The notes: generated by a model not told the origin, from the letters alone. Positions 29,408 to 63,600 are shown, counted from the first letter of the stretch. The stretch: 64,000 nucleotides of DNA from Neoechinorhynchus agilis (GCA_051530055.1 CM121341.1:15230784-15294783); one strand, 5' to 3'. Program-made: numbers and translations.

Positions 29408-29830
29408 TTAGCACGATCTGAAGGATTCTCGTAGTTGGGCGAGCTTTCCGGTGTGTTTAAAGTATTTGTAGCTGAGATAAGCTCCAACGCCTGAAAGGAG
29501 TGGCACGGGTCCGATGACTACTCCCAGGTACAAATTCGCTAGGACCGTATTGATAACGAGGGTTTGTTTGCCAGTGGTGGACATTTTGTCATAATCAATT
29601 TTTACTTGTCGAAGAGTTCGGACGACCGGATCTTCTTTTTTTATGGCTGCCATGAACGTTTTTACGTATTTTGTGGTTTCGGTCGGTAGTTGATCCTCAT
29701 GTTGGCCATTTGCTATAGTTCTTACCTGGATGTTCTTTGGGAGGTGGAGAAGCGCTGCCCGTTGAATGGCACGAGTTTGGTGGTACATTTCTACAAAATT
29801 CGCGATAAAACGATGGAAGCGAAGGCGCAT
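29408..29830 (-). CDS. Small uncharacterised protein (~140 aa) with a basic N-terminus and a C-terminal hydrophobic hairpin
   Basis: Intronless ORF from ATG at 29,830 (MRLRFHRFIANF...) with hydrophobic segment LVINTVLANLYLGVVIGPVPLLSGVGAYLSY. No family recognised. Confidence 0.5.
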   Translation of the reverse strand: MRLRFHRFIANFVEMYHQTRAIQRAALLHLPKNIQVRTIANGQHEDQLPTETTKYVKTFMAAIKKEDPVVRTLRQVKIDYDKMSTTGKQTLVINTVLANLYLGVVIGPVPLLSGVGAYLSYKYFKHTGKLAQLRESFRSC

Positions 29831-30841
29831 CAAACGGAAGTGCGTTTACATGATGAACCGGAAGAAATGTTTGAATATTACTAAATTCCAGACTAGGAAC
29901 GCGATTTTTATCGACTTGGAAATCTCCAAATGTAGGGTTTTGTACTACGTAGTTTGTGGGTTCGTTGTGAAAGTTTTCACTACGCAGTACCGAATTTCAT
30001 TTCTTTGTCGACTGCTGTTGCACTCGGAAGCACTTTCTCCATTTATAAGACTTCTTAATACCGAAACGACGGAATCAGATTCTCATTATGAATCGCGAAT
30101 ATGAAGAGTGCGCACAACACGTCGACTCTTGTGAGTTTATGAAGCTATAGATAGCATTAATGGATCTTAGGAGATATCGGCGGAAAAAGAAGAGCATAAT
30201 GCCTACAGTTATCTCCTTTTTAAAGGATTATTTTTGACGGGGAACATCTCCGCGTTTCTGACTCGATGATAGTACCGGCAAAAGGCTTTTTATATGTTTT
30301 AGATTGGAAAAATTTGTGTATTTTAATTTAGCAATCAAATTACGTTTGGGGCAAATCTTATGGAGCGAACCCCTACGCCAGACTTCGGGTCATTTTTGAA
30401 ACCTGAGAAGTGAACGCGAATCTGCATTAACGCTCGTTTGCTAGTTCAGAATGTATTTGTTGTCTTTTTATACCTAAAGAAGGTCACAAATTGCAATCTG
30501 TTCAATATCAATTGATTTTAGCACAAAATAATCCTTCCGTTTTTCTAGAGTTTATTTATTCGACGATTCGTGAACGCTATTCAGGGGAAACGCCGAAATG
30601 AATCGTTTAAGGACCTTTGAAGACGAAAACCGAAAGGAAAGCAGCTATCGCTGTGCATGCTAAAATGACGAACTCATGAAGACTAAAACTTACTTTTTTG
30701 CGCCAATATTTAAAAAAGTAACACTCCAGACAATTTGGGTATATTGTATCAATCTCTCTTTTTGACTTACCTCGATGTACGCAGTTCTCTTATATTTCTG
30801 AGAAGTCCAAAAGGTATATTGTTCCACCGTATAATTTCGTT

Positions 30842-33085
30842 TTAGCGTCTTCGTATTAAACTGTTCATGTAAGCGAGTAGCGATCCCGGTTTCAAGGCCG
30901 CCACGTCGTCCGCTCTTGCTTTGTTTCTCAAGTTTAGGTCATTGGAAACCAACAGTGAAGTCTGTGTTTGTCTGTACAAATATTGATACTTTTTTTCGGT
31001 CAATCGAGCACAATCTAGAATGGATTCATCATTAATCCGAGAAAGCATTCGACTGTGTTTATGATCGTTGCAAATCTTTAAGTTTGATTTTTGTTTGTGA
31101 TCATAAATCCACTCCAGTGCGGCTTTGGCCTCACAATATGTTGGTTTTCCCGGTTTAGCGAGATTTTCAAGTTCACTTACGACTACGTTAGGAATCACGC
31201 ATTTGAACTCCATCAAACGCATTGCTTCCTCTACTTGGTACCGATCATATAGTACGGCGTTCGTGTCGATCACTGCGATCAATAATCGATAAACAGGTTC
31301 CGTATAACCGTCTTCAGTTGAATCAAACTTCAATTTTCTGATCATCCGTCCACAATGCGACTCTAGTAAATGTTGGTCAAAGTGCATACTGTCGCAAATA
31401 ACATTACAGACAGCCTTCGACCCCAGCAATGTTTGAATCTTAAAAGTTCCTTTCTCTTCGATAGAAAAGGTGTTCGATACCTCAAGAAGGTCACGAGTTA
31501 AAACCTTGTCCGTTTGCTCGATGTCAACACAAAGGTCAAGCATCACAGCAAATGCGGCCAATGAAAGCGAAGACCGGTTATTGACGGCTAGCGAGAGACA
31601 TGCCCGCATTACGGGTTCACAGAAGTCTGATAAAGCCATATATTGGTGAAATATATCACCTTTGCCTCTCATGGTTTTGCTCAGAATCGAAGCGATCATG
31701 AATATCGATTTTTCTAGCTCTTCGTTGTCGTCATGAGACTCCATCGCTTTCATCATGCAATCACTAAATGCGCGGGTCACATCAGCTGTAATCGCTACGG
31801 AGGATGTCTCGTGGCAGCTGTATAAATCCCTCAAGAAGATGTGAATCAATCCAATCAGTCCGCCTTGCGGCATAGGCTTTGCAATGTTTTCATCAAATTT
31901 CTTAAGACGGCATTGAATTTGCTGGCTTCGAAAATCAAGTATCGAAGGGATTCTCGATTAAATGGCGAGGAAATAGGAATTTTTACCGAATTTAAACTGT
32001 ACAGGAAAAAAGTTACGTTCAATAATAAGTATAAAATCAATTCTGAACATAAATATCGTTTCTTTTGATTATACGTCATCGGCGCTAATGGATTTTGAAT
32101 CCTTTTGACCCCAGAGATAGGGATCAGGGGCTCAAGTCCACTAGACCACCTCAAGACCTGCCAGTTTTTAGCTTAGGCAACTTTTTAAACTTAACGATGA
32201 TCGTATAAAAAATTCTATAATTGTAATTACTATTGTTTCAATTTCACCTAGCGATATTTTAATCATTATTGTTTCAATTTCACCTAGCGATATTTTAATC
32301 ATTATTGTTTCAATTTCACCTAAATTGAAACAATAAATTGTAATTACGATTATCGAGCATACCTTCGCGAAGAAGAATGATTCCTTCTGGATTCCTATAT
32401 AATTATCAGAGTCGGTTAAAGCTCCACTGTTTTGAATTGAGCAGGATAAAAATTCACCAACTTTTTTCTTCATAACTTTTCTTAGCTCATCGGAAATTTC
32501 GTTAGCAAGATCAATCATTTCTATAGACAATAAGGCAAAATATATTGAAGCTAAGAACGTAGGATTCCCCGGTTGCACCAGCAATAGTTTCGCTATTTTC
32601 TCGTATGCTAATGTACGCGGCGATGACGAGGTACTGTTCTCGGTGTTCAGATAACAATTGAGTATATCTCGCATTGAAATTGTCATATTTGAATCGACAG
32701 TTTGAATGGAGTACTTCAGACTTAAAAGATCTCCAATTTTAAGAAACAAATCCATTAGCACAATATCTTTGGTTTCATCCTCGTCTGAACAGGACGATAT
32801 TCTTTTTATGTAATCAAAGAAAAGTTCACTTCCTTGTTCTAGTACATGCTCAATCGTAACACGTAAAGTATGCTCTTCCACGAGATCCGATTTTGCACAT
32901 TCTTCGATTATAGGCTCATAAAAACTTCCCCATAGTCGACAGGAACTTCTAAAGACGTCTTTAATTGTATTATTGTTTCGCATCCGTTCAACGTGGCGGA
33001 GTCTCATTGCTTGACCTTGTTCAATTAATCGATCTACGCTTCTATAAGTATCTTTTTCGGCACGAAGACATTGAGTGATTTCCAT
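30842..33085 (-). CDS. SMG6: SMG6/EST1A-like protein: EST1/14-3-3-like region plus C-terminal PIN nuclease (3 coding exons, ~650 aa)
   Basis: LWGSFYEPII resembles the EST1-domain LWKNAFYQVI motif. PIN motifs VIDTN, VIPNVVVSELE, INDESILDCA and LVSNDLNLRNKA keep their acidic catalytic residues. GT-AG introns at 32,362-32,158 and a ~65-nt one near 31.95 kb join the three ORFs in frame. Confidence 0.75.
32219..32347. repeat. Intronic 36-bp tandem repeat (2.6 copies) plus short inverted tail, flanked by a 12-bp direct repeat
   Basis: Unit TATTGTTTCAATTTCACCTAGCGATATTTTAATCAT at 32,231 and 32,267, partial at 32,303, then inverted AATTGAAACAATAA. AATTGTAATTAC occurs at 32,219-32,230 and 32,336-32,347. 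Confidence 0.9.
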
Positions 33086-34504: not shown

Positions 34505-34960
34505 CTGAAATCAATTTAATACTTTTAAATAAAAATTCGGTTTTTTTGGTCATGAATTCCTCGATACACGACATGATGATCTTATCCCGACAATTCAAAT
34601 CTTACTATCGAAGTTGTCAACTTACGCTTCAGCTTTACTACAAGATATAACAAAATCAATGAGAAAGGCAAACCTATGAGTTATTAGGATGCTTTTATGA
34701 AAGATCCAAGAGTAGAGTGTATTAGAAAGCACTTTCTCATTTTGGGATAAAGTTTGTAAATTTCAAAAACTAAATCTAAAAATACCTAAATTAGATTTTT
34801 GGTCGTTTCATTGAAAAACTCAATTTTTCTAATCTGGTAATCAACTCGAAATTAGAAGTCATCAATTTTTCTATAAAAGTTCCTCACTAATACCCACGAA
34901 TAAAACGCAATCTTTAATCATCAAAGAATCTGGTATTATCGAACAAAATCCTCCTTCTGA

Positions 34961-35779: not shown

Positions 35780-38160
35780 TTTTAAAGCACTCGAATTTTG
35801 CTCAAATCTTCAGAAATTGTACCGATTGTGCAATTTGTTAGCTTCTTTTTTTATCGAAAGACAACAAATTAATTATTATCTGGCTAATAAGCATAAAAAA
35901 TTATAGCATCCATCCAAAATCGATGGCATTTAGCACTTCGTTTTGGAAAGGGAAGGAAATACCCAGAATTCGTTTAGAATTGAACGATCGCAATTTTCGA
36001 GCTTCTTTTATTACCATAAGACAACGAATTAATTTAAAACTTGCGAATAAGCATTAAAAGAAAATACAATACCAATCAAAAAAATGGACGGCATTTTGCA
36101 TTCCGTTTTAATAAGCAAAGGAAAACGGAGAATTCGTTAGTTTTTAGATCTTACTTTTAAAAGTGACTCACTTTTCTCAAATCCTCAGGCGTTTAACCGA
36201 TTAAAAATTGTATGTTTCCTTTTCTAAACAGTTAAAAAATTATTCTTAACTATCGAATGAGCATTAAAATAAAGTATAGCATCAGTCACAAATCGACGGC
36301 ATTTATCATTCCGTTTTAAAAGGGAAAGGAAATCCGAGAATTTGTGAGTTCTAAAGCCTTGATTTTTAAAAAGATCCATTTTTGCCAAAAACTTCAGACA
36401 CTGAACCGATTAAAATTTTTTCTTCTTTATCAAAAGACAGCAAATTAATCCTTAACTGGCGAAGAGCATTAAAATTAAGTTAACATAAATAAATAATCAC
36501 CGGCATTTTTCATTCCGTTTTAAAAATTAAAAAATAATGAAAATTCATGTTTTAAGGTTTTCTTGTAGAAGCCATTAGCCTTTACCCAAATCTTCAGGCG
36601 TTGAAATGATTTCAATTTTTGAGCTTCTTTTTTAATCAAAAGACAATGAATTAATTCAAAACTTGCGAATAAGCATAAAAATGGGCTGCATTTTGCATTC
36701 TGTTTTAAAAGGGCAAGGAAACCTGAGAATTCGTAGGTTTTTAGGACTCGCTTCTAAAAGCAATTCATTGTTGCTCAAATCTTCAGACATTGAAATGATA
36801 TCAATTTTTGAGTTTCTTTTGTATAAAACGACAACAAATTAATTCTAAACTAGCGAATGAGCGTTATAATTAAGTTTTGCGCCAGTATAAAATAGACGAC
36901 ATTTAGCGTTCCATTCTAAAAAGAAAAAATCCGAAGAATTTGTGTGTTTAGGACTGGTTTTTAAAAGCGATTCATTCTTGCTTAAATTTTTAGACCTTCA
37001 AACGATTGCAATTTGCGAGCTTCTTTTTTATCGAAAGACAACAAATTAATTCTTAACGTGCAAATGAGTGTTAAAATTAAGCATAGCACCAATGAAAAAT
37101 CGGCGGCATGTGGCAAGATTAAAATGAATTCCGTGAATTCGTAGTTTCCATGACTCGCTTCCAAACGATATATTTTTTCTCAAGTCAATGTGAGATAGAA
37201 CGATTGCAAATTGTATACTTTTTTTATAGAAAGACAAGAATTTTATTCCGAACATGCGAATGATCATTAAAATTAAGCATAGTATCCATCCAAAAACGAC
37301 TACGTTTAGCATTCCGTATTGAAAACGATGTGAAACCTAGAGAACCCGTTAGCATTTAGGGCTGAATTTTTAGTGTGATTCATTTTGTCCAAAACTTTCC
37401 GACATTGAACCAGTTACAATTTACGTGCTTGTTTGTCATCAAATGATGAAAAAAATATATTCTGAACTGGCGAATAAGCATTGAATTTAAGTATAGCGTC
37501 CATGAAACATCGATAGCATTTTTCGTTCAGTTTTTTAAAAGAAATTAAACCCCGATAATTCGAATGTTTTTAACTCTCGCTTCGTAAAGCGCTTGATTTT
37601 GGCTCAAGCCTTTAGACATTGTACCGATTGCAATTCGCATGCCAATTTTTTTCACAAAACTACAAATTTTTATGTTGAACTGGCAACTGGGCATTAAAAA
37701 ATTATGTATGGTATCCTTCCACAATTGACTGCATTTAGCATTCGGTTTTAAACTTTAAAGGAAACCCCGAGAATTCGTGAGTTTTAAGACTAGTTTCCAA
37801 GAGTGATTCATTTTTCTCAAGTTGACGCTGAAATGAACGGTTGCAATTCGTTTGCTTTTTTTCATTAAAAGTCAAAATTTTATTCTGCACTTCCGTAAAA
37901 CCTTAAGAAATAAGGCGTAGCTTCAATCACAATCTGACGGCACTTAGCTTTCCGTCTTAGAAAACTGGACAATATCACGAGATTTCGCGCGTTTTTAGGT
38001 TTCACTTCTTAGGGCGATGCATTTTATCCCAAATCTTCAGAGATTTAGCTGCTTGGAATTTAAATGCTTCTTTTTTTATCAGAAGACAGGCTGCGAAAAT
38101 GAAGTACAGTTTTGATATAAAGTCGGCGGCATAAAGCTATTCGTTTTGCAAAACCAGCCA
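35780..38160. repeat. Old, degenerate tandem repeat of ~190-215 bp, about 12 copies
   Basis: Recurring blocks AAATCTTCAG, AAAAGACAACAAATTAATT, GAATAAGCATTAAAATT, GACGGCATTT(A/T)GCATTCCGTTTT and GGAAACC(C)GAGAATTCGT. The GACGGCATT-like motif recurs at ~35,923, 36,087, 36,296, 36,501, 36,896, 37,104, 37,512, 37,727 and 37,937. Confidence 0.85.
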
Positions 38161-39883: not shown

Positions 39884-40692
39884 ATGAATCCAGCGGTCAC
39901 TATCTTTGTCGTTCTCCTGTTCATTAATGGAGAATTCAGCAAAAAAGAGTCTCATTCAAAAGATTCTAAAATAGGTGGGTATGTTTGGCTGTGCTATTTT
40001 TCCTTAAAAAATCGTTTATATACAGTTAGCACGAAAAAAGCCAGTGCATTCCTCGGTTTTAAGGATTGCATGAAAGCAATGAACTGTGGCCCGGCGTTAA
40101 AGAAAGAATGCGTTCATGAGTGTAAGAAAGGTTTGGTTTGCTTTTTAATCAAATAAGGTTCGCTCTATTTTCGTTAATAGGAAACACTAAAGAAGAAGTC
40201 GAAGAACATGTTGAGAAATTGAGGAAGGTTCAAAAATATGCAAAAGATGCGAAGGATGCCAAACGTATGAGCAAAAGGCAGGATACTGATCTCAGTGATA
40301 CTGATTCCGATACTGATTCAGACGATGATTCAACTAGTAGCAGTGAAAATGAAGGTTATTGTAGACTCGGCAATAAGTGCCAAGGACGTAAGATTATCCA
40401 TGTCTCAAACATTTAACTTGTGCTTTCGAGGCGTTTTAGTGCAAAAGGCAAATCGATTTTTATCGTACCGAGATTGTATGAAAAGAATGAATTGCGGAAA
40501 AGCAGTTAAAAATGAATGCAAAGAGGAATGTCTTGAAGGTAAAATAATAACCGTAAAAGCAAAGGCAAATTTGCATTTTTACTTGTTTTTGCATGTTGAT
40601 TCTTGGTTTTATTGACGTTTTGTAAAAATATAGGAACTATAAGAAATGCGGAAAATATGAACAATGTTGGAAAGGAAATTGTCCGATATTAG
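39884..40692 (+). CDS. Secreted precursor with two Cys4 modules and an Asp/Ser-rich spacer (5 exons)
   Basis: Signal-like MNPAVTIFVVLLFINGEFS. GT-AG introns at 39,975-40,025, 40,131-40,180, 40,388-40,430 and 40,539-40,633 are all phase 1 and give one open frame. Modules KASAFLGFKDCMKAMNCGPALKKECVHECKKG and KANRFLSYRDCMKRMNCGKAVKNECKEECLEG. Confidence 0.75.
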
Positions 40693-41269
40693 GATCTTTT
40701 TAATAATTTTAAAATGTACGAAAATATTTCCAATCGACTCGGATGTTCATTGTCCAAATTGAACGTGTTTTATATAGCTTAGACTTATACTGTAATATAA
40801 TTATACTAAAATCTTATATTTCAAACTATACGTTAGATTAATGATTTGCTATCTTAAAGTGTACTAAGGGAGGAATTACCGGTTCACTATTAAGTACTGA
40901 TATTTATTACTAGCAGAAATTGTCAGGCTCCACCACCCGGTGGCAGCGTTGACATTCATGACCGCTGATTATTGTTAGTGTTAATTGTCGTTTTGGAAAA
41001 TTCACTTCCGACGAGGAAAGATTTCCCAAAGGTGACTGCGAAGTTATTAACCAGCTAAATGTGAACGTATTACATCCTTCGGGAACTTTGAGTTATTCCT
41101 ACTGAAAATGGCATTAATAAGCAATTTAGCTTAGCAGCCATATATTAAAAAGAGAAAGTTTAACGGTATCATTTGTCCCATTTTTGTAGTTTGAATACAA
41201 GTGGCATCGGAAACATGAAAATTTAATCCCGGTGATAAAAATTTCTTGATAAAAATTATGTCTCATTAA

Positions 41270-41986
41270 TGTAGAGAAGTTTATTATTTACATTGTGGTG
41301 AATGCTTGTTGTCCCTGCTTTCATTCGGGGAAAGGAAACTTCTTCCGGCTGCCCGTCATTACGTGGAAGTCGCCACATACCTCCCCTCCAGTGTCGCCGC
41401 ACTAATCCGTTCCGTCCTGGAAACGGCCGGTCTCTCGAGTTGAACCTCGGTGTGATGACGGCGTGTTGCTAGCAGCTGGACCTGGTCAGGACGCTGACCA
41501 GGCCGGTCCCGTCGGGGAGGATCGTACTACCAGGTGCCGTCTTTGGTCCGTTGTTTGTGGGCTGCGCCGACTGCCAGTGCTGAGGCATCGGTGACATTGT
41601 CGAACGCTGCTTGGCTCGTTGGGTTGAGCAAGGAAGTCCGTATGTCACGACGCTGCGCTGGGCCAGATGTCGAGCAACCGAGTTGAACCTCGGTGCGATG
41701 ACGGCGTGTTGCTGGCAGCTGGGCCTGATCAGGACGCTGACCAGGCCGGTCTCGTTGGGTAAGGACAGCCGGGTATTGGAGGAGCAAGGCCTCGATGTTG
41801 TTGATGGGCCTGATCAGGACGCTGACCAGGCCGGTCTCGTCGGGGTCACCAATTTGGCGGCGTCACGTAAGAAGAAGATTAAGTTTATTATCTTTACATT
41901 GTGGTGAATGCTTGTTGTCCCTGCTTTCATTCGGGGAAAGGAAACTTCTTCCGGCTGCCCGTCATTACGTGGAAGTCGCCGCCACA
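41270..41986 (-). mobile_element. Non-autonomous miniature LTR retroelement (TRIM-like), ~717 bp
   Basis: Direct terminal repeats start TGTGGCG on the minus strand and carry AATAAA. PBS TGGTGACCCCGACG (41,851-41,838) is complementary to the tRNA-Trp 3' end. PPT GGAGGGGAGGTA (41,389-41,378) abuts the 3' LTR. GC-rich internal region with no pol. Confidence 0.8.
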
Positions 41987-42410
41987 AATCAAAGAGCTTT
42001 TTCTGTGATTATACGATTAAACAACTCCGCCCAGATTAAAATACCACGATAGTAAATAGAGGAACGTTCATTTTGATAGACATTAGCAATTTTCGATAAA
42101 TTACTTTGACATATCGATCTTGATTTAAATGCACAGTTCTCTTTTTGACTGGGAAACATTAAGAAGTCTAAATTGGCTTTTGTTTAAATTGTAATTTTAC
42201 ATTTGTTTGAAGATTGAACTACTCATTCAAGTATATGGCGGAAAATTTAAAGGAATTAATTAAATCCTATATTCCGGCACAATATCGTGATTTTATCAAG
42301 TTTGTTAATAAATTTTACACAACGTGTGTACTCTTTATCTCGTTCGTAAGACCGATAGCTTCTTATCGACTTATTAATTCTATCTGTTATCCGTTGGCCG
42401 CTCTCATTAG

Positions 42411-42616
42411 GTAACACCGAGGAGGAGGTAGAGGAGCATGGTTCGTTCTTGCGAAAGATTGACAAGTACATCGCAGAAGCTAAGAGACTGAAGAGCACTC
42501 TTCATCAAAAGGATTCGGATGATTCAACATCGTCCTCAGATTCTGACGATTCCACAGACGATACGGACAAGGACAGTACTGATAGCGATACTGACACGGA
42601 TTCCGATAAAAAGTAA
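42411..42616 (+). pseudogene. Exon paralogous to exon 3 of the 39.9-kb secreted precursor; gene or gene remnant
   Basis: After acceptor CTCTCATTAG it reads GNTEEEVEEHGSFLRKIDKYIAEAKRLKSTLHQKDSDDSTSSSDSDDSTDDTDKDSTDSDTDTDSDKK*, versus GNTKEEVEEHVEKLRKVQKYAKDAK...DTDSDTDSDDDSTSSS. Upstream exons could not be resolved. Confidence 0.6.
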
Positions 42617-49803: not shown

Positions 49804-50944
49804 ATGCTGATTTCATCTTCGAGTTTAAGCTCCACGTCTACGGCAATATCGCTCATGTCGACCAATGTAGCTCCGCACGTTCAATTGAGTTTAGCGTTTG
49901 TAACGACCGTAAGATGCTTTGGAATGTTGATTATAATCTTTGGGACGATTGGTAATCTTCTGTCGATACTTGTGCTCACCAGACCACGCCTAAGAAAACA
50001 ACCAACAGCCGTCTATTTGACCGCACTCGCATTCTCAGACATTGGAATTATCTATTTTATCTACTTCACTCATTATCTCTCATTCTCGTACCGAAAAAAT
50101 GTTCGCCTATATAGTTCATTTCTCTGTAAACTGTCGTGCTTCACCAGCCATACCTTCCTCCAACTAAGTCCTGCATTACTAGCACTAGTTAGTGTCCAAC
50201 GGCTCTTAACAGTAAAAAATCCTTCCATAAATGTTCCTTTAATATGCAATCTAAACATGTCTAAGATCATCATCTCCACGGTCGCACTGATTTCAGCACT
50301 AGCCAACTGCCATTTTTTGGTATTTTATCGCCTTCAGCACGATTCGTACGATAACGTTTCATTCTGTGGACCGGATTCCCGATACTCAGCTTATCGATAC
50401 TTCTTATCTCGAATCCATCCAAGAGTAATACTTTTCTCATGCGTTATCGGACCGTCCTTTACCATGATAATATGCAACTTCAAACTCGGACGCCATGTTC
50501 TAAAAACTACCAAAGGGGTATTCCGTGATTCAGCTAGCGAAACCAACTCTACTTTGGCCGGGCAATCGAAAAGGAGGCAAAATCGACAAAAATCTTTAAC
50601 TATCATGCTCACCAGCGTATCGGCAGTTTATATTCTATTCACAGCACCAGCAATCTTTGTCTATCTTTTATTCCGTCATGAGTGATCACAGCAAAGGAGG
50701 GGAGAGCAAGGTGCTGCAGCTGCGAACGCTCAATAGCACAATCATCAATTCGTTTAGTCTCAGAGCCATCATATGGGCAGTCGTGAACATGCTGCTGACG
50801 CTGAACACTGTTGCAAATTTCGTCTTATATTTCCTGGCAGGTAATGTATTCAGAAGTGAACTTAAGCTTGTAAAAACTTGTGGAGCGAACTGCAAGGTCA
50901 TCAAAAAAATCGATACGCCCACCTATTTTATTCTTTGCAATTGA
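49804..50944 (+). CDS. Rhodopsin-class (family A) peptide-receptor-like GPCR, intronless, with a 1-nt frameshift after TM6
   Basis: TM1 GTIGNLLSILVL, TM2 YLTALAFSD, TM3 C...VSVQRL (DRY variant), TM6 YILFTAP, and TM7 NTVANFVLYFLAGNVFR in the +1 frame. Removing one T from TTTT at 50,666-69 fuses the two ORFs. Confidence 0.85.
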
Positions 50945-51382
50945 CATTTTTTCGCTCTTTTTTAAATGTAGCCTAAAATAGTTAGTGCAAATATGAAGCG
51001 TTATAAAGTGTTGATCGCAACAATATTATGGATTAATCTTTCTGATAAGCGCTTAAAATGTCATGCCATTGTTCTTGTTCTAAATAATCTATAAATACGA
51101 CCATTAATCACACAAACAACGGCAATCGCTCCACATGATAATCTCAGGATGTCTACACCAAATGGGCCTCGTATATTCGGAGACTACAGACAGTCAAGAA
51201 AGTTGATAATATTTTGAAGCCATTCGCCTAGCTCTCTACTGCGCAATCAACTACTGCGACCATTTCGATTGTAACAATAAACGTGTAAGTGAGCGATTTT
51301 GAATAGCAGTTTGGGTTGTGTATTTGTGATTAAGTTTTTAAGAACTTTTAATCAAAATCACATGTTTTTTATCCAGTAAAAA

Positions 51383-53628
51383 ATGCGAGCTGACCGGAAA
51401 ATAGCTTCAGCAGCTCTTCATACATATAAATTACAAGACTTTTCTGTGAATTGGAAGTCTTAGATAAAGTGCGAGAAGTCTTGTTAAACAGCTTTTCTAA
51501 AAAAGACCAGGTTATTTAAGTGGAAACGAAATGGTGAAGATGAGAACTGGCCTGAGCATGCAATCGATGCTCTGTACAAGCGATTGAAAAAGAAGAAAGG
51601 TTCTACCTAGTTTTTTTGCAATTCACTAAAGTTTTCTAATATTTTTAGGCGAAGTCGAGAAACTAGTTGAGATTTTATCAAACCCATCTTCCATTAGTGA
51701 ATGTGTCACGATTCCTCGCTCAATGGATGGCCGAATTCAGTACGCAGCTAATCGAAAATGCCTTCCTCATGTCCTCTATTGTCGCCTATGGAGATGGCCA
51801 GATCTTTCAAACTGTCAAGAACTTAGATCTGTGCCAAACTGCGACCATCCGTATCAGTCCGAAAATAAAAACAGTAAAGATATTTGCATCAATCCATACC
51901 ATTACATACGGCTTACACGAGCTGCCACTACTGCCGCTTCGACGAGTAAATATCACTGTAAAATTATTGATTGATAATTTTCTTGTATTTTAGATCTTCC
52001 GCCCGTTCTGGTTCCATGCTACAATCAGTTCCCCGCGGTTTCCGAACAAACGCGAGCAAACGAAAATCAACCTTTCTCCACAGCAGACAACGTTCAATCT
52101 GGTAAGTATTATGGTTGAAATCGGTTAGCTTTTCTAATTTATGGTTCATTTAAAACTGTAAAATAAATAGATCTACACTGTGCTTCTCTGCTACACATAT
52201 ACAACCAACAAATCATTTTTTTGTGAAACTATTTCGCTTTTAATTCTTGTAAATATCCCGACGTTGCCAGTATACTGGCAGCGTTCCCTCGCTGTATCAC
52301 AATTGCGATTCGTTGAGCGAGGAAATTTCTCGAGCGCGGTTCCCCCGTCGTCATTTCGTCCTTCGTCCCAAATCGTCGAGGAGAGGGAGCGCTAACGGTC
52401 CCAAGGCTCCATACGTTTCCACGGCAATAGGGACGAAATGGTAATTCCTTAGGAGCTCTCTATATTTTGAACGCTTTCGTTCCTCAGCTACGACCGCTGA
52501 ACCTCCAGGGCGCTTTTTTCAAAAGGGAAAATTACTGGGGGCAAGCGTGTCCACACAAGTCGCGTCCCATAAAAGCGGTTTTCCCTCCCGCCATGGAAAA
52601 ACCGTGACACCGTCAGGTCGCTTGCTGTCTAGGCGGCATAAATTACTCGGCTCTAGAATATTGGACACGTGAACGGAATCAAGCTAAATGATAATAATCG
52701 ACAAGTTTTCTCCAAAAATCGGTTTTTTGCCTGACTAGAACATATCAATACATTAACATTTCTCTCCTTTGATAATCATGTACAAATTGGATCGCCATTG
52801 TCATTGTAGGTGCTCCAATAAGTGCCAATAACCAGGATATCCACCAGCATTCAGCTTATGTTCCATACGAACCACAATCAAATTGGTGTATGATAGCTTA
52901 CCATGAACTTAATCAACGGGTTGGGCCCGTTTTCTTTGGAAACAGTCCCACAATTCAAGTAGACGGATACACGAACCCACTGTCTTCGGATTTTACAATT
53001 AGAAATGATCCACTAAAATCACGTATCTTTTTCTTTTTTCGTGAGTAAGAAAATTATACGAGTTATAAAGAAACAACTTTTGCAAATGACAAATGCCGTT
53101 GCTGCCCCGCCTCCATTTACACGATTTTCACTTGGTCCAATATCATCTTTATTCCGAAACTCCACTACGAAGAAAGTCCGAACTCACATTGGAAAAGGTA
53201 TATTGCTGACACAATCAGCCAATTCGCTAGATGTCTACCTTCAAGTACTGGGATCTCATCCGGTGTTTGTCCGGAGTAGAATCCTTAATGGCGAACAAGG
53301 ATTTCTCGACTGTACAGTTGTCAAGATGCATCCGGGAACAAGCCTCAGAGTATTCTCAGAAGCTGTATTTTATCAAACACTCACTGCTGCTCTTCAATGT
53401 GGTCCTACCGAAAACTGTGTAAGTCCGTTCGATGCGGTCTATGATCTGATAGGCTGCTGCAAGTTTTCGTTAAGTTTCATCAAAGGTTGGGGCAATGGAT
53501 ATGCGAGAAGCGATATATCCTCAACTCCCTGTTGGCTCGAAGTTCACCTTAATGGACCACTGTCATGGTTAGATAATATCTTAGCTACTATGGGATGCGC
53601 TCAATCGATGATGTCTTCAAGAACTTGA
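51383..53628 (+). CDS. SMAD1: Receptor-regulated Smad, BMP type (Smad1/5/8-Mad-like), divergent
   Basis: MH1: RLFKWK...[14 protein letters not shown]|[40 protein letters not shown]. Linker LPPVLVP. MH2: [52 protein letters not shown]. The start exon is tentative, and orthology within Smad1/5/8 is not established. Confidence 0.85.
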
Positions 53629-59719: not shown

Positions 59720-62700
59720 TGTGTGGCGAGTAACGTCAGAGGTCCACCAATCGATGTGCACGCATGGTGCATGGAGTACAACTAGAAAACAGAGCGCGTT
59801 GGTTTTTTGAGTTGAACTACATTGGTGCCCCCGACGCTTGTTAGCGAAGCAACAAGATATGGACAGTCAGGCATCGATTCAAGCGGTAAACATGAAATTG
59901 CCACCTTTTTGGATCGAACAATCCCGAGTGTGGTTCGTACAAGCTGAGGCTCAATTTGCACTGAGGAGCATTATGGCAGACGACGAAAAATTCTATTACG
60001 TCCTCGCAGCTCTGGATCAAAATACTGCCGGACGAGTAATAGATCTTCTGGAGACTCCGCCACAGCAAAAGAAGTACGATGCACTCAAAGACCGCTTACT
60101 CGATACATTTTCCTTGTCGGAATACACGCGTGCCAGGCGGATTCTACACATGGAGGAACTAGGGGACGCTCAACCATCAGAACTCATGGACAAGGTTTTA
60201 GGATACCTCGGGGCAGGTGTTCATGGAGCGGCTACCTGAGGATATGCGCTCGGTACTTGTTCACTCCAAGATTACGGATCCCCGTAAACTTGCACAAGCA
60301 GCCGACGAATTGTTCAGGGCAAAGCGGTTCACCGCGGGATCGATTAAACAAAACACCGATTTTATATTCCCTGTTGAACAAACCAAAAAGAAGCAAACGG
60401 ATATTTGCTTCTATCACCAACGGTACGGCAACCGCGCCAAGCGTTGCCGACCACCTTGTTCGATGGCACAAGACGCGTTTAAAAAAACTGCTAAGGAAAT
60501 AAACACGTTATTCTATGTTCACGACAGTGGGACAGGTCGACGATTTCTAGTGGACACCGGTGCCGAGGTGAGTGTTATGCCGGCGTCGATAGCTGATAAG
60601 TCAGTTAGTGCACAAAGCCGAACACTTACCGCGGCTAACGGCTCCTCAATCAAAACATTCGGAAGCCGGATGGTGGTGCTTCGTTTCGGTAAATGGACGA
60701 TTAAGTGGAAGTTTCTGATCGCAGCTGTGCGGCAACCGTTGCTGGGGGCTGATTTCCTTCGACACAGCGGACTGCTAGTCGATGCCCGTGGGTAAAAGTT
60801 GGTCGACCCATTAAACCACTGGGGAGAAGGCATTCCCTCATCACGAAAAGAAACCGAAGTAGCTCAAGTGAATATGACAAGTCCAAAAATTTCGATTTAC
60901 GCAAAGATGTTGAGTGCATTCCCGGGCATCAGTACTCACGATTTCTCGGGTACTGAGGTGAAGCATGGTGTGCGGCACCACATTCAAATGAATTGTGCTC
61001 CTATCCACGCACGGGCGCGACGCCTTACACCTGAGAAACTAGCCATCGCACAAGAGGAATTCGCCAGAATGGAATCGCTCGGAATCATTCGACGATCAAG
61101 CAGCCAGTGGGCGTCTCGGTTACACGTGGTTCCGAAATCAGACGGCACATGGAGGCCGTGCGGCGATTATCGACGATTAAACGAAATCACCATTCCTGAT
61201 AGATATCCGGTCCCTCACATCCACGATTTCTCAGCGCAGCTTTTCGGACGGGAGATATTCTCGAAGGTCGATTTGGTCCGAGGCTATCATCAAATCCCGG
61301 TCGCAGAGCACGACATACCTAAGACGGCAATCATAACGCCATTCGGTTTGTTCGAATTCCTCAGGATGCCTTTTGGCTTCTAAAATGCTGCACAAACCTT
61401 TCAACGGCTGATGGACGCAGTCTGCTCCGGTCTTGATTTCGCTTTCGTGTACCTGGATGACATCCTCATCGCCAGTTACAATCAGGCCGATCATTTACGC
61501 GACCTAAGAGTCCTATTCACTCGTCTAGCTGAACAGGGACTGGCCATCAACCTGCCAAAGTGCGTATTCGGCGTAAAGGCTCTCGACTTTATAGGTCATC
61601 GTGTCAGTGAAGAAGGAACCATCCCGATGCCCAGCAAGGTGGAAGCCATTCGAAGTTTTCCACGGCCAACGACAGTGAAGGCCCTTCAGGAGTTCGTGGG
61701 CATGGTAAATTTTTACCACTACTTTATGCCGGCGGCTTCCAAGTTGATGCATCCACTATACCTCGCGTTATCACAAAAAACCCCGAAAAAGATGTTTCCA
61801 TGGACTGAGGAAATGGATAAAGCTTTCAAAGTTACAAAAAACCACTGGCAGATGCCACTTTGCTTACCCACACCGCCAAAGACATCCCCATTGCAATCAC
61901 CACGGACGCTTCCGATTATGCTGTCGGTGCCATGTTGCAACAGAAAATATCTGACAGTTGGAGACCGCTAGCCTTTTCAGCCGTCAATTACGAAAACCCG
62001 AGCAAAAATACAGTGCCTTCGATCGAGAGCTGCAGCAAATTATCTTGCGATCCGACATTTCCGTTATGCTGTGGAAGAACGCTTTTTGACGGTTTTCACG
62101 GATCATCGACCACTCACTTTCGCAATAACACGAGTATCGGATCCATGGTCAGCACGGCAACAACGACACCTGAGCTATATTTCCGAGTATACCACAGACA
62201 TCCAGCACGTTAGCGGACGTAACAATAGCTTGGCCGATACACTCTCTAGAGCAATATTGAATAACGTCGCCGAGGGTATATCCTTTGAAGAGATGTCGCG
62301 AGCACAAAAAGATGACTCGGAAACACAGGCTTTACGTACAGCAAAGACTGGATTGCGTCTCCTTGATGTTCCAATTGGGGATGGTGAGATGACCATTTTG
62401 TGCGATATTTCAACAGGAAGGCAAAGGCCGTTAGTACCCGTTGCTTGGAGACGCCGCGTTTTTGATGCCGTCCACGAACCTCGAATCGGAGCTACGCGCA
62501 AGTTGGTGTCGAGCAAGTTCGTCTGGCAGGGTCTCGTCAAGGACGTGGGAAACTGGACGAAAATGTGTCTAGCCTGTCAAAAAGTGAAGATTCATCGACA
62601 CGTTAAAGCACCGCCGGAAATATTCGATGCACCTACAAACAGATTTGCACACATACACGTGGATCTCGTAGGCCCTCTCCCACCTTCTCAGGGATTCACA

Positions 62701-63600
62701 CACTTGTTGACGATAATAGATCGGTTCACGCGTTGGCCAGAAGCGATTTCACTTTCAAAAACCGACACACTTTCATGTGCGCGAGCTTTGGTCAGCAATT
62801 GGATTTCGCGATTCGGGGTTCCGACGGATATCACCTCAGATAGGGGAGCGCAATTCACCTCCAAAATATGGACCGACATGTCGACCCTATTTGGCACCAA
62901 ATTACACCACACGACAGCTTATCATCCACAGTCCAACGGTATGGTCGAAAGGATGCACCGGCACCTGAAAAACGTCCTTAAAAGCCCGTCTCAAATGTGC
63001 CAATTGGTATGACGAGCTACCGTGGGTCCTGCTGGGCACGAGGACATCGCCTAAATCCGATTTTGGGACGTCATCCGCTGAACAAGTCTACGGGAGCCCA
63101 ATTAGAGTTCCCAGCGATTTCGTTAGCCCTACACCGACATGAGCCAATCAAGGAAACCAACTCGAAAGTTTGCGCGATCGGATCCGTCCGTTAGTCCCCG
63201 TACCGACGTCACGACATGGAAATATCTCGACCTACGTCCCAAAAGCCCTTAAGATCGCACGCCATGTGTTCGTCAGGAGTGAGCAGATCGGAGGACCGCT
63301 GCTGCCAGCATACAGAGGACCCTACAGAGTAATCGAAGCAGGTGAAAAATATTTCACGATTGATTATAGAGGACGCAACGAAACGATTGCGATAGACAGG
63401 CTGAAACCCGCGCATTGTGACCCTTCCTCCACAGTCGAAGCCGACATACCACGCAAGCGAGGACGGCCACGGAAGACTTAGCGGAGCCTCTTGGGGGAGC
63501 TGTGTGGCGAGTACGTCAGAGGTCCACCAATCGATATGCACGCATGTTGCATGGAGTACAACTAGAAAACAGAGCCGTTGGTTTTTTGAGTTGAACTACA
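59720..63600 (+). mobile_element. Ty3/gypsy LTR retrotransposon, CsRn1-like clade, decayed (3,881 bp)
   Basis: LTRs at 59,720-59,821 and 63,501-63,600 (TG...CA; 2 substitutions and 2 indels). PBS TGGTGCCCCCGACG (tRNA-Trp-like), PPT TTGGGGGAGC, and flanks ACCA/ACCT (4-bp TSD with 1 mismatch). Confidence 0.97.
59859..63481 (+). pseudogene. Disrupted gag-pol: gag, aspartic protease, RT, RNase H, integrase
   Basis: Gag KLPPFW...WFVQAEAQF with CHCC motif CFYHQRYGNRAKRCRPPC; protease FLVDTGAEVS; RT VYLDDILI; RNase H TDASDYAVGAMLQQ; integrase HVDLVGPLP...IDRFTRWPEA and GPY. In-frame stops at 60,793-95 and 61,381-83, plus several frameshifts. Confidence 0.95.

Follow-up and report, generated by a model that had tools for sequence, protein, structure and literature searches.

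In mammals the messenger RNAs (mRNAs) of the nonsense-mediated decay (NMD) factors UPF1, SMG1, SMG5, SMG6 and SMG7 are themselves substrates of NMD, which buffers the activity of the pathway. The triggers are mostly long 3' untranslated regions (UTRs) and upstream open reading frames, not introns in the 3' UTR. In plants, the 3' UTRs of SMG7 and Barentsz contain introns more than 50 nt past the stop that give NMD autoregulation (Nyiko et al. 2013, PMC3711448). Endogenous NMD targets have been listed (PMC5238794), and there is a review of the SMG5/6/7 family and of how NMD modes vary between eukaryotes (PMC6173133). Here we consider a group of splice-like motifs just downstream of the stop codon of a PIN-domain gene in Neoechinorhynchus agilis (Acanthocephala). 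The window, the whole stretch of 64,000 nt that was analysed, is part of chromosome CM121341.1 (19.4 Mb) of GCA_051530055.1, and adding 15,230,783 to a window coordinate gives the chromosome coordinate. A preliminary description had read the motifs as two introns in the 3' UTR of an SMG6-like NMD nuclease gene, and proposed the same logic as in the two plant genes, an mRNA that is a target of NMD in a negative feedback. The plant cases were shown experimentally and SMG7 has no PIN domain, whereas the motifs here are known from sequence alone.

Our preferred reading, which we rate at an even chance, is that the motifs are fortuitous, or at best incidentally spliced, in the somewhat long 3' UTR of a PIN_4 gene. 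They would have arisen without selection for a regulatory role, and the mRNA would normally end after AATAAATAAA (30560-30551), possibly earlier at an AATATA variant. Any splicing would be incidental, and the arrangement of two mini-introns would not be a dedicated NMD switch. The first donor, if used, would be expected to pair with a TTTTAG and give a single intron of 88 or 111 nt, not the proposed 47 + 34 nt. That at least one splice junction is real is possible, though we lean against it; the exact 47 + 34 nt arrangement is unlikely, and the NMD feedback loop, which would chain three inferences, is very unlikely.

Splice-like motifs downstream of the stop

The open reading frame (ORF) of the last exon, 343 codons at 30842-31873 on the minus strand, is a 100% match to the 593-aa 'hypothetical protein ACOME3_003618' (P0001). 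The genome of N. agilis, about 46 Mb with about 13,700 genes and with coding sequence making up 31.6% of its length, was annotated with BRAKER and RNA-seq hints (PMC12690905). The gene calls match coding ranges, and the UTRs are for this reason unannotated. No assembled transcript of the gene was found in the protein clusters, where its cluster has one member on one contig, a genome record. The elements of the gene and of its 3' flank are as follows.

30842..33085, minus strand: PIN-domain gene (100% match to P0001, gene call with the same range, exon map from the protein)
33085-32363, minus strand: exon 1 of the PIN gene, from the protein mapped back onto the DNA
32362-31901, minus strand: annotated intron of 462 nt, GTATGC...CTTAAG, from the same mapping
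31900-30842, minus strand: exon 2, with the stop TAA at 30844-30842
30771..30841, minus strand: the 71 nt just after the stop, without AATAAA or ATTAAA and with AATATA at 30820-30815 and 30796-30791
30724..30770, minus strand: candidate intron 1, 47 nt, gag/GTAAGT...tctgGAG/tgt, by reading the sequence
30694..30723, minus strand: putative internal exon, 30 nt, TGTTACTTTTTTAAATATTGGCGCAAAAAA, likewise
30660..30693, minus strand: candidate intron 2, 34 nt, aaa/GTAAGTTTTAG...CATTTTAG/cat, with GTAAGT at 30693-30688 and cattTTAG ending at 30660
30683..30770, minus strand: alternative single intron, 88 nt, from the first donor to the TTTTAG directly after the second GTAAGT, from the list of AG distances
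30770->30660, minus strand: alternative pairing of 111 nt, ending in TTTTAG, from AG distances
30693->30651, minus strand: alternative pairing of 43 nt, ending in CAG, from AG distances
30693->30645, minus strand: alternative pairing of 49 nt, ending in TAG, from AG distances
30560-30551, minus strand: AATAAATAAA, two overlapping AATAAA at +282/+286 from the stop, the earliest canonical poly(A) signal

The stop codon itself is, as judged from the alignment, genuine, since the annotated protein ends in the column where an old paralog stops as well. The annotated intron of the gene contains a 36-bp tandem repeat (2.9 copies, window 32220-32322) that is in frame with exon 1, and the unspliced ORF gives GEIETIMIKISL three times.

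All elements of the motif list in the preliminary description were found in their places when the minus strand was read. Both candidate introns have a GT donor and an AG acceptor. The acceptor AG of candidate intron 1 (30725-30724) stands in the context tgtctgGAG and is the first AG at least 28 nt downstream of its donor; AG distances of 47, 78, 82, 88 and 98 nt were listed from this donor. The other pairings of the same sites (88, 111, 43 and 49 nt) are at least as plausible as the proposed pair, and fit as well or better. In the mRNA strand the predicted junctions would read CGTACATCGAG/TGTTACTTTTTT for the 47-nt intron, GGCGCAAAAAA/CATGCACAGCG for the 34-nt intron, CGTACATCGAG/TCTTCATGAGTT for 88 nt, CGTACATCGAG/CATGCACAGCG for 111 nt, GGCGCAAAAAA/CGATAGCTGC for 43 nt and GGCGCAAAAAA/CTGCTTTCC for 49 nt. 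The two candidate junctions would lie 71 nt and, in spliced distance, 101 nt past the TAA, which would place them, on paper only, beyond the 50-55 nt of the vertebrate and plant rule (PMC3711448).

The region is a 3' flank of about 290 nt that probably forms the 3' UTR of the PIN gene. No AATAAA or ATTAAA was found before +282, and about 22 nt past AATAAATAAA there is a U/GU-rich stretch (ttattttgtg). Ahead of the first donor there are AATATA variants, which are weak, at +22 and +46. Among eight other flanks, the first canonical signal was found at +7 to +147 in six, at +289 in the TPR gene and at +601 in the N-terminal half-model of the paralog. Since AATATA variants precede the donor and most other flanks have early signals, the transcript could, as far as these signals predict, end before the first donor. 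Further downstream of the poly(A) signal of the PIN gene, at window 30427-30497, there is a short dispersed repeat; several copies of it, in the opposite orientation and with about 87% identity over 46 nt, are found upstream of Mog1 in a stretch free of genes (35795-37072). Apart from this repeat the stretch is unique, and a position of the motifs inside a repeat or a gene fragment was ruled out.

To what extent the candidates look like introns of this genome was judged from six annotated introns with reconstructed coordinates, five of them with a unique solution. The gene call of the ASTER-family gene was compatible with three reconstructions of its intron, from which the one with a T-rich acceptor (ACTTTAG) was chosen. 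The introns of the EF-hand and TPR genes, for which brute-force reconstruction gave several solutions, were excluded from the set; a presumed single-exon form of the EF-hand protein is absent from the records. Intron statistics are absent from the main text of both N. agilis papers.

Mog1 intron: 48 nt, donor aaa/GTAAGA, acceptor TTTTTAG
IMD-domain gene intron: 47 nt, donor GTAAAT, acceptor CCTTTAG
IMD-domain gene intron: 47 nt, donor GTATGA, acceptor GTTTTAG
IMD-domain gene intron: 308 nt, donor GTTTCG, acceptor TCTTCAG
ASTER-family gene (near the paralog) intron: 51 nt, donor GTTCGT, acceptor ACTTTAG
PIN gene intron: 462 nt, donor GTATGC, acceptor CTTAAG

The short class (n = 4) is tight, 47, 47, 48 and 51 nt, and in the best-fitting reconstructions all four have a TTTAG acceptor. 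Ab initio candidates broaden the range of short introns to 42-52 nt, and an ORF-joining scan was too noisy to give a minimum length. Candidate 1 has the acceptor CTGGAG, with no T-run, as compared to TTTAG in the four-member short class. Candidate 2 has an acceptor, ATTTTAG, that matches this consensus, and a length of 34 nt, which is 13 nt below the class of 47-51 nt. Each candidate mini-intron thus mismatches one property common to the reconstructed short introns. Furthermore, both use a GTAAGT donor, which none of the six reconstructed introns has. As the reference set is small, such mismatches are weights and not exclusions.

The hexamer GTAAGT is not enriched. In the 30.6-kb part of the window without satellite and retroelement it occurs 8 times per strand, as compared to about 9.7 expected by our own arithmetic from the base composition. 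It is also found within coding sequence, at the conserved catalytic motif VVSE of the PIN domain (31180) and in an ORF for an MH2 domain (53419). As the former copy stays unspliced within a coding exon, the presence of the hexamer is not enough for an intron. In 400 first-order Markov simulations of the same 30.6 kb, two GTAAGT placed 30-120 nt apart on one strand were expected 0.21 times per simulated sequence, with a probability of 0.19 for at least one such pair.

The PIN protein and its paralog

The domain that identifies the gene is located at the extreme C-terminus of the protein.

30892..31273, minus strand: PIN_4 domain, residues ~451-577 of 593 (Pfam PIN_4, E 2e-18 to 4e-18)

In an alignment of 12 PIN sequences, which included 10 other PIN_4 domains, the invariant D/E/D/D columns are occupied by D453, E484, D532 and D562 of this protein. 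With its four acidic residues preserved, the protein is plausibly active as an endonuclease. Ahead of the PIN domain lie 440 residues with a predicted helical structure, and an AlphaFold2 model built from the alignment of the two paralogs was too poor for a comparison of folds (mean predicted local distance difference test score 36.8). Neither in P0001 nor in the N-terminal half of the paralog was there an EST1-type Pfam match at E<=10 that would show an EST1/14-3-3-like domain. A profile of the two paralogs found no SMG5/6/7 chain in the PDB, and the protein itself (phmmer) found no PDB chain at all. By eye, IGDLLSLKY and QPGNPTFLASIY resemble the SMG7 motifs LGDxxRY and PxxGxPYNQLA, which is a lead and not a test.

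A profile search of 1.84 billion representatives gave 15 hits. The 12 that come from outside N. agilis cover the PIN domain only, at E ~1e-5 to 1e-3, and include SWT1-type proteins (one cluster from the yeast Lodderomyces), a bacterial-type PhoH-PIN protein and several uncharacterised proteins, two of these with a C-terminal PIN. No SMG6 ortholog and no EST1 domain was among the hits, and among the same 1.84 billion representatives there was no relative of the non-PIN N-terminal region outside N. agilis. The PIN domain scored 12.5 bits against that of human SMG6 and 25-38 bits against the other hits, which had been pre-selected as the best in the library. With a broader PIN profile the best match among solved structures was the human SMG6 PIN (2dok/2hww, E 1e-21), and the DIS3 and SMG5 PINs were also matched; as there was no SWT1 chain among the PDB matches, this profile cannot separate SMG6 from SWT1.

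The protein shares with SMG6 (EST1A; 2HWW, 2DOK) the C-terminal PIN_4 domain, the full acidic set, which tells SMG6 from SMG5, and a long preceding region that is predicted to be helical. It differs in that the EST1/14-3-3-like domain is undetected, and in its size, 593 aa as compared to about 1400 aa for human SMG6. The SWT1-type proteins, which act in nuclear messenger ribonucleoprotein surveillance, are its nearest detectable PIN relatives, at E only ~1e-5, and NDESILDCA of N. agilis is similar to xDDSILDCC of those hits. Several of them have the Pfam domain SWT1_3rd, which in SWT1 follows the PIN domain; here it gave no match, and the protein ends 16 residues after the PIN. Thus the predicted architecture, with the PIN at the extreme C-terminus, resembles that of SMG6 or SMG5, whereas the sequence leans towards the SWT1 type. 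The name SMG6-like NMD nuclease agrees with the PIN_4 domain and its acidic residues, but not with the undetected EST1-type domain, the lack of an SMG6 ortholog among the hits and the higher scores against SWT1-type PINs, and SMG6 orthology is not established. As predicted from its domain, the gene is a divergent, fast-evolving and catalytically intact PIN_4 endonuclease.

On the same chromosome there is a paralog (P0002 + P0003) with 51-56% protein identity, whose stop is at the same alignment column; the coding sequences are 68-69% identical. It is located at L002 9260-11117 (chromosome 7.84 Mb), is full-length, and has been annotated as two genes 21 nt apart. P0003, 239 aa, is the N-terminal half, and P0002, 324 aa, has a suspicious first exon of two residues; jointly they are colinear with the 593-aa protein and are, from this colinearity, probably one gene split by the annotation. 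In the 3' flank of the paralog an AATAAA stands at +147, and GTAAG is absent as far as +385. This flank shows no counterpart of the motifs and no similarity to the flank of the PIN gene. In this only relative that was compared, the proposed UTR introns thus found no support from conservation, but the comparison is not a strict test, since the coding sequences themselves are only 68-69% identical.

Possible introns, unspliced donors and other transcripts

A number of observations weigh against a fortuitous origin of the motifs. Two GTAAGT followed by TTTAG 20-70 nt after the second were expected 0.02 times per simulated sequence, and the full configuration, scaled to the ~3.6 kb of sense 3' flanks, about 0.001 times, figures whose true significance is weaker because the statistic was defined post hoc; against chance, the motif cluster is unusual, not decisive. 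In the eight other 3' flanks examined, GTAAG is absent from the stop up to the first canonical poly(A) signal. The first donor, GAG/GTAAGT at 30770-30765, is a perfect consensus and a perfect match to U1, and its interval to the first AG, the 47 nt of candidate 1, is the modal length of the short introns. There is no canonical poly(A) signal before +282, and both donors are therefore probably within the transcript. If both candidates are taken out, 59 open codons follow the TAA in the frame of the main ORF (window 30580-30841, minus strand), for which the base composition gives a probability of about 0.02. Where introns are short, as in this genome, pairing of splice sites probably takes place across the intron, and sites such as these could then well be spliced, however they arose. 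It is conceivable that the PIN gene has one or more real 3'-UTR introns, whether as the pair of 47 + 34 nt or as one intron of 88 or 111 nt, with a junction at least 71 nt past the stop. NMD would then keep the mRNA low if NMD of the type that requires the exon junction complex (EJC) operates, and an SMG7-like loop would follow if the protein is an NMD endonuclease. The improbability of the cluster by chance speaks for such introns, as do the first donor, the late poly(A) signal, the distance of the junctions from the stop, and the TTTTAG acceptors, at distances of 88 and 111 nt from the first donor and of 34 nt from the second. On the other side stand the lack of a T-rich acceptor in candidate 1, the length of candidate 2 far below 47-51 nt, the paralog without a counterpart, and a PIN gene that is not established as an NMD factor. 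NMD in Drosophila and C. elegans is, moreover, independent of the EJC. In a BUSCO table (PMC12256650), the column that by an inferred column order belongs to N. agilis has SMG9 and PYM marked missing and SMG8 marked fragmented, which hints that the NMD/EJC periphery is reduced in this species and has no bearing on UPF1 or the core EJC. On balance we find real introns of this kind doubtful.

The next gene downstream also bears on the origin of the motifs.

29408..30327, minus strand: gene for a protein of 140 aa, coding sequence 29830-29408, with a 497-nt upstream region (gene calls)

It is located 1012 nt downstream of the PIN gene on the same strand. The unit is duplicated ~41.4 kb away (L004 2505-3423), beyond a satellite array, and has a sharp boundary at window 30327. 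The L003/L004 alignment shows no difference between the two copies from this boundary, which lies 497 nt upstream of the ATG, up to where the coding sequence begins. They encode the same protein, for which the only records are its two places on the genome. The duplication is very recent. Since its boundary lies at 30327, the sequence 30328-30841 is outside the duplicated unit and adjoins the PIN gene, which is a further point for introns that belong to the latter.

The motifs may instead be part of another transcript, either the 5' leader of the 140-aa gene or an unannotated non-coding RNA. The position of that gene on the same strand would fit, and two further GTAAG, 20 nt apart at 34605 and 34625 (minus strand), likewise lie upstream of a gene start, that of the TPR gene, and past the Mog1 stop; these could be a 5'-UTR intron or another chance cluster. 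However, AATAAATAAA lies between the motifs and the downstream gene, the recently duplicated unit that starts at 30327 excludes them, and no Rfam match was found in the window, which makes such a transcript a slim prospect. Donor sites can also act without being spliced, and U1 sites, both engineered ones and those in the late mRNAs of papillomaviruses, have been described to inhibit polyadenylation. Bound by the U1 small nuclear ribonucleoprotein, the two unspliced sites in the terminal exon would damp expression by inhibiting polyadenylation at AATAAATAAA, 130-210 nt downstream. Both hexamers are perfect donor/U1 matches, and the only canonical poly(A) signal lies within ~210 nt downstream of them; no acceptor is needed, so neither the poor acceptor of candidate 1 nor the shortness of candidate 2 weighs against this mechanism. 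It is nevertheless highly improbable in our view; the sites are not conserved in the paralog, and we know of no examination of it in Syndermata. The pieces could, lastly, be coding, as small alternative 3' exons of a C-terminally extended or altered isoform that is reached by readthrough or from an upstream alternative donor. Apart from the 59 open codons, removal of the 88-nt variant leaves the main frame open for 48 codons, which end in the hydrophobic FVILACTAIAAFLSVFVF. However, the last segment is open in two of the three frames in any case, the paralog has its stop in the same alignment column and its frame closes two codons further on, and TAA-A is not a known readthrough context. Translation of the variants bore out the earlier statement that no ATG-initiated ORF spans the pieces. 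The frame-2 isoform that had been suggested (...AYIE/CYFFKYWRKK/HAQR and a stop) translates as written and ends after 14 codons, and nothing supports it. Coding use of the pieces is consequently hard to credit.

Our preferred reading, as the most economical one, stays with motifs that arose fortuitously in the 3' UTR of the PIN gene, or that are spliced incidentally at best. In its favour we count the chance frequency of GTAAGT and of its pairs, the unspliced copy in the PIN coding exon, the mismatches of donors, acceptor and length with the reconstructed introns, the flank of the paralog, the AATATA variants ahead of the first donor, and searches that gave no SMG6-specific feature. The most far-reaching alternative would be a lineage-specific and catalytically intact PIN endonuclease, possibly a fast-evolved functional counterpart of SMG6, with one or two spliced mini-introns, 71 nt or more past its stop, that make its own mRNA a junction-dependent NMD target; we think this most improbable. 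If true, it would extend to an animal the intron-based feedback on NMD factors, whose demonstrated cases, SMG7 and Barentsz, have so far come from plants. Junction-dependent NMD would then have evidence in its favour in a spiralian whose NMD/EJC periphery appears reduced, which would bear on how far this mode has spread outside vertebrates. At present the value of the motifs lies in a precise hypothesis on a plausible-looking pattern. The fast-evolving and duplicated family of PIN nucleases, whose non-PIN part has no relatives outside N. agilis in the databases searched, may outlast the motifs in interest.

Other features of the window

A 181-bp satellite occupies window 1-29212 with 156 copies (92% matches). 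It runs off the start of the window and abuts the 140-aa gene at its other end. It fills almost half of the window, which is striking for a genome of 46 Mb. The duplicated unit of the 140-aa gene includes the start of the satellite, and the second copy is then followed by only ~2.2 kb of it.

At window 59838-63012 on the plus strand, with about 49% GC, there are ORFs for gag, protease (LVDTGAEVS), reverse transcriptase (YLDDILIAS), RNase H and integrase, in at least six pieces. This is probably a decayed long terminal repeat retroelement.

Some gene models of the window also deserve a comment. An annotated model of 749 aa at window 49855-53628 joins a seven-transmembrane receptor with the MH1 and MH2 domains of a SMAD, and is probably two neighbouring genes fused by the annotation; the receptor, 354 aa, can be closed by a 76-nt intron at 50682. 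A gene model of 235 aa is spread over 2.7 kb at window 39884-42616, where the GC content is raised (0.42), the GC skew is strong (+0.14) and GAAGAAG-type repeats are found, and its structure looks doubtful.

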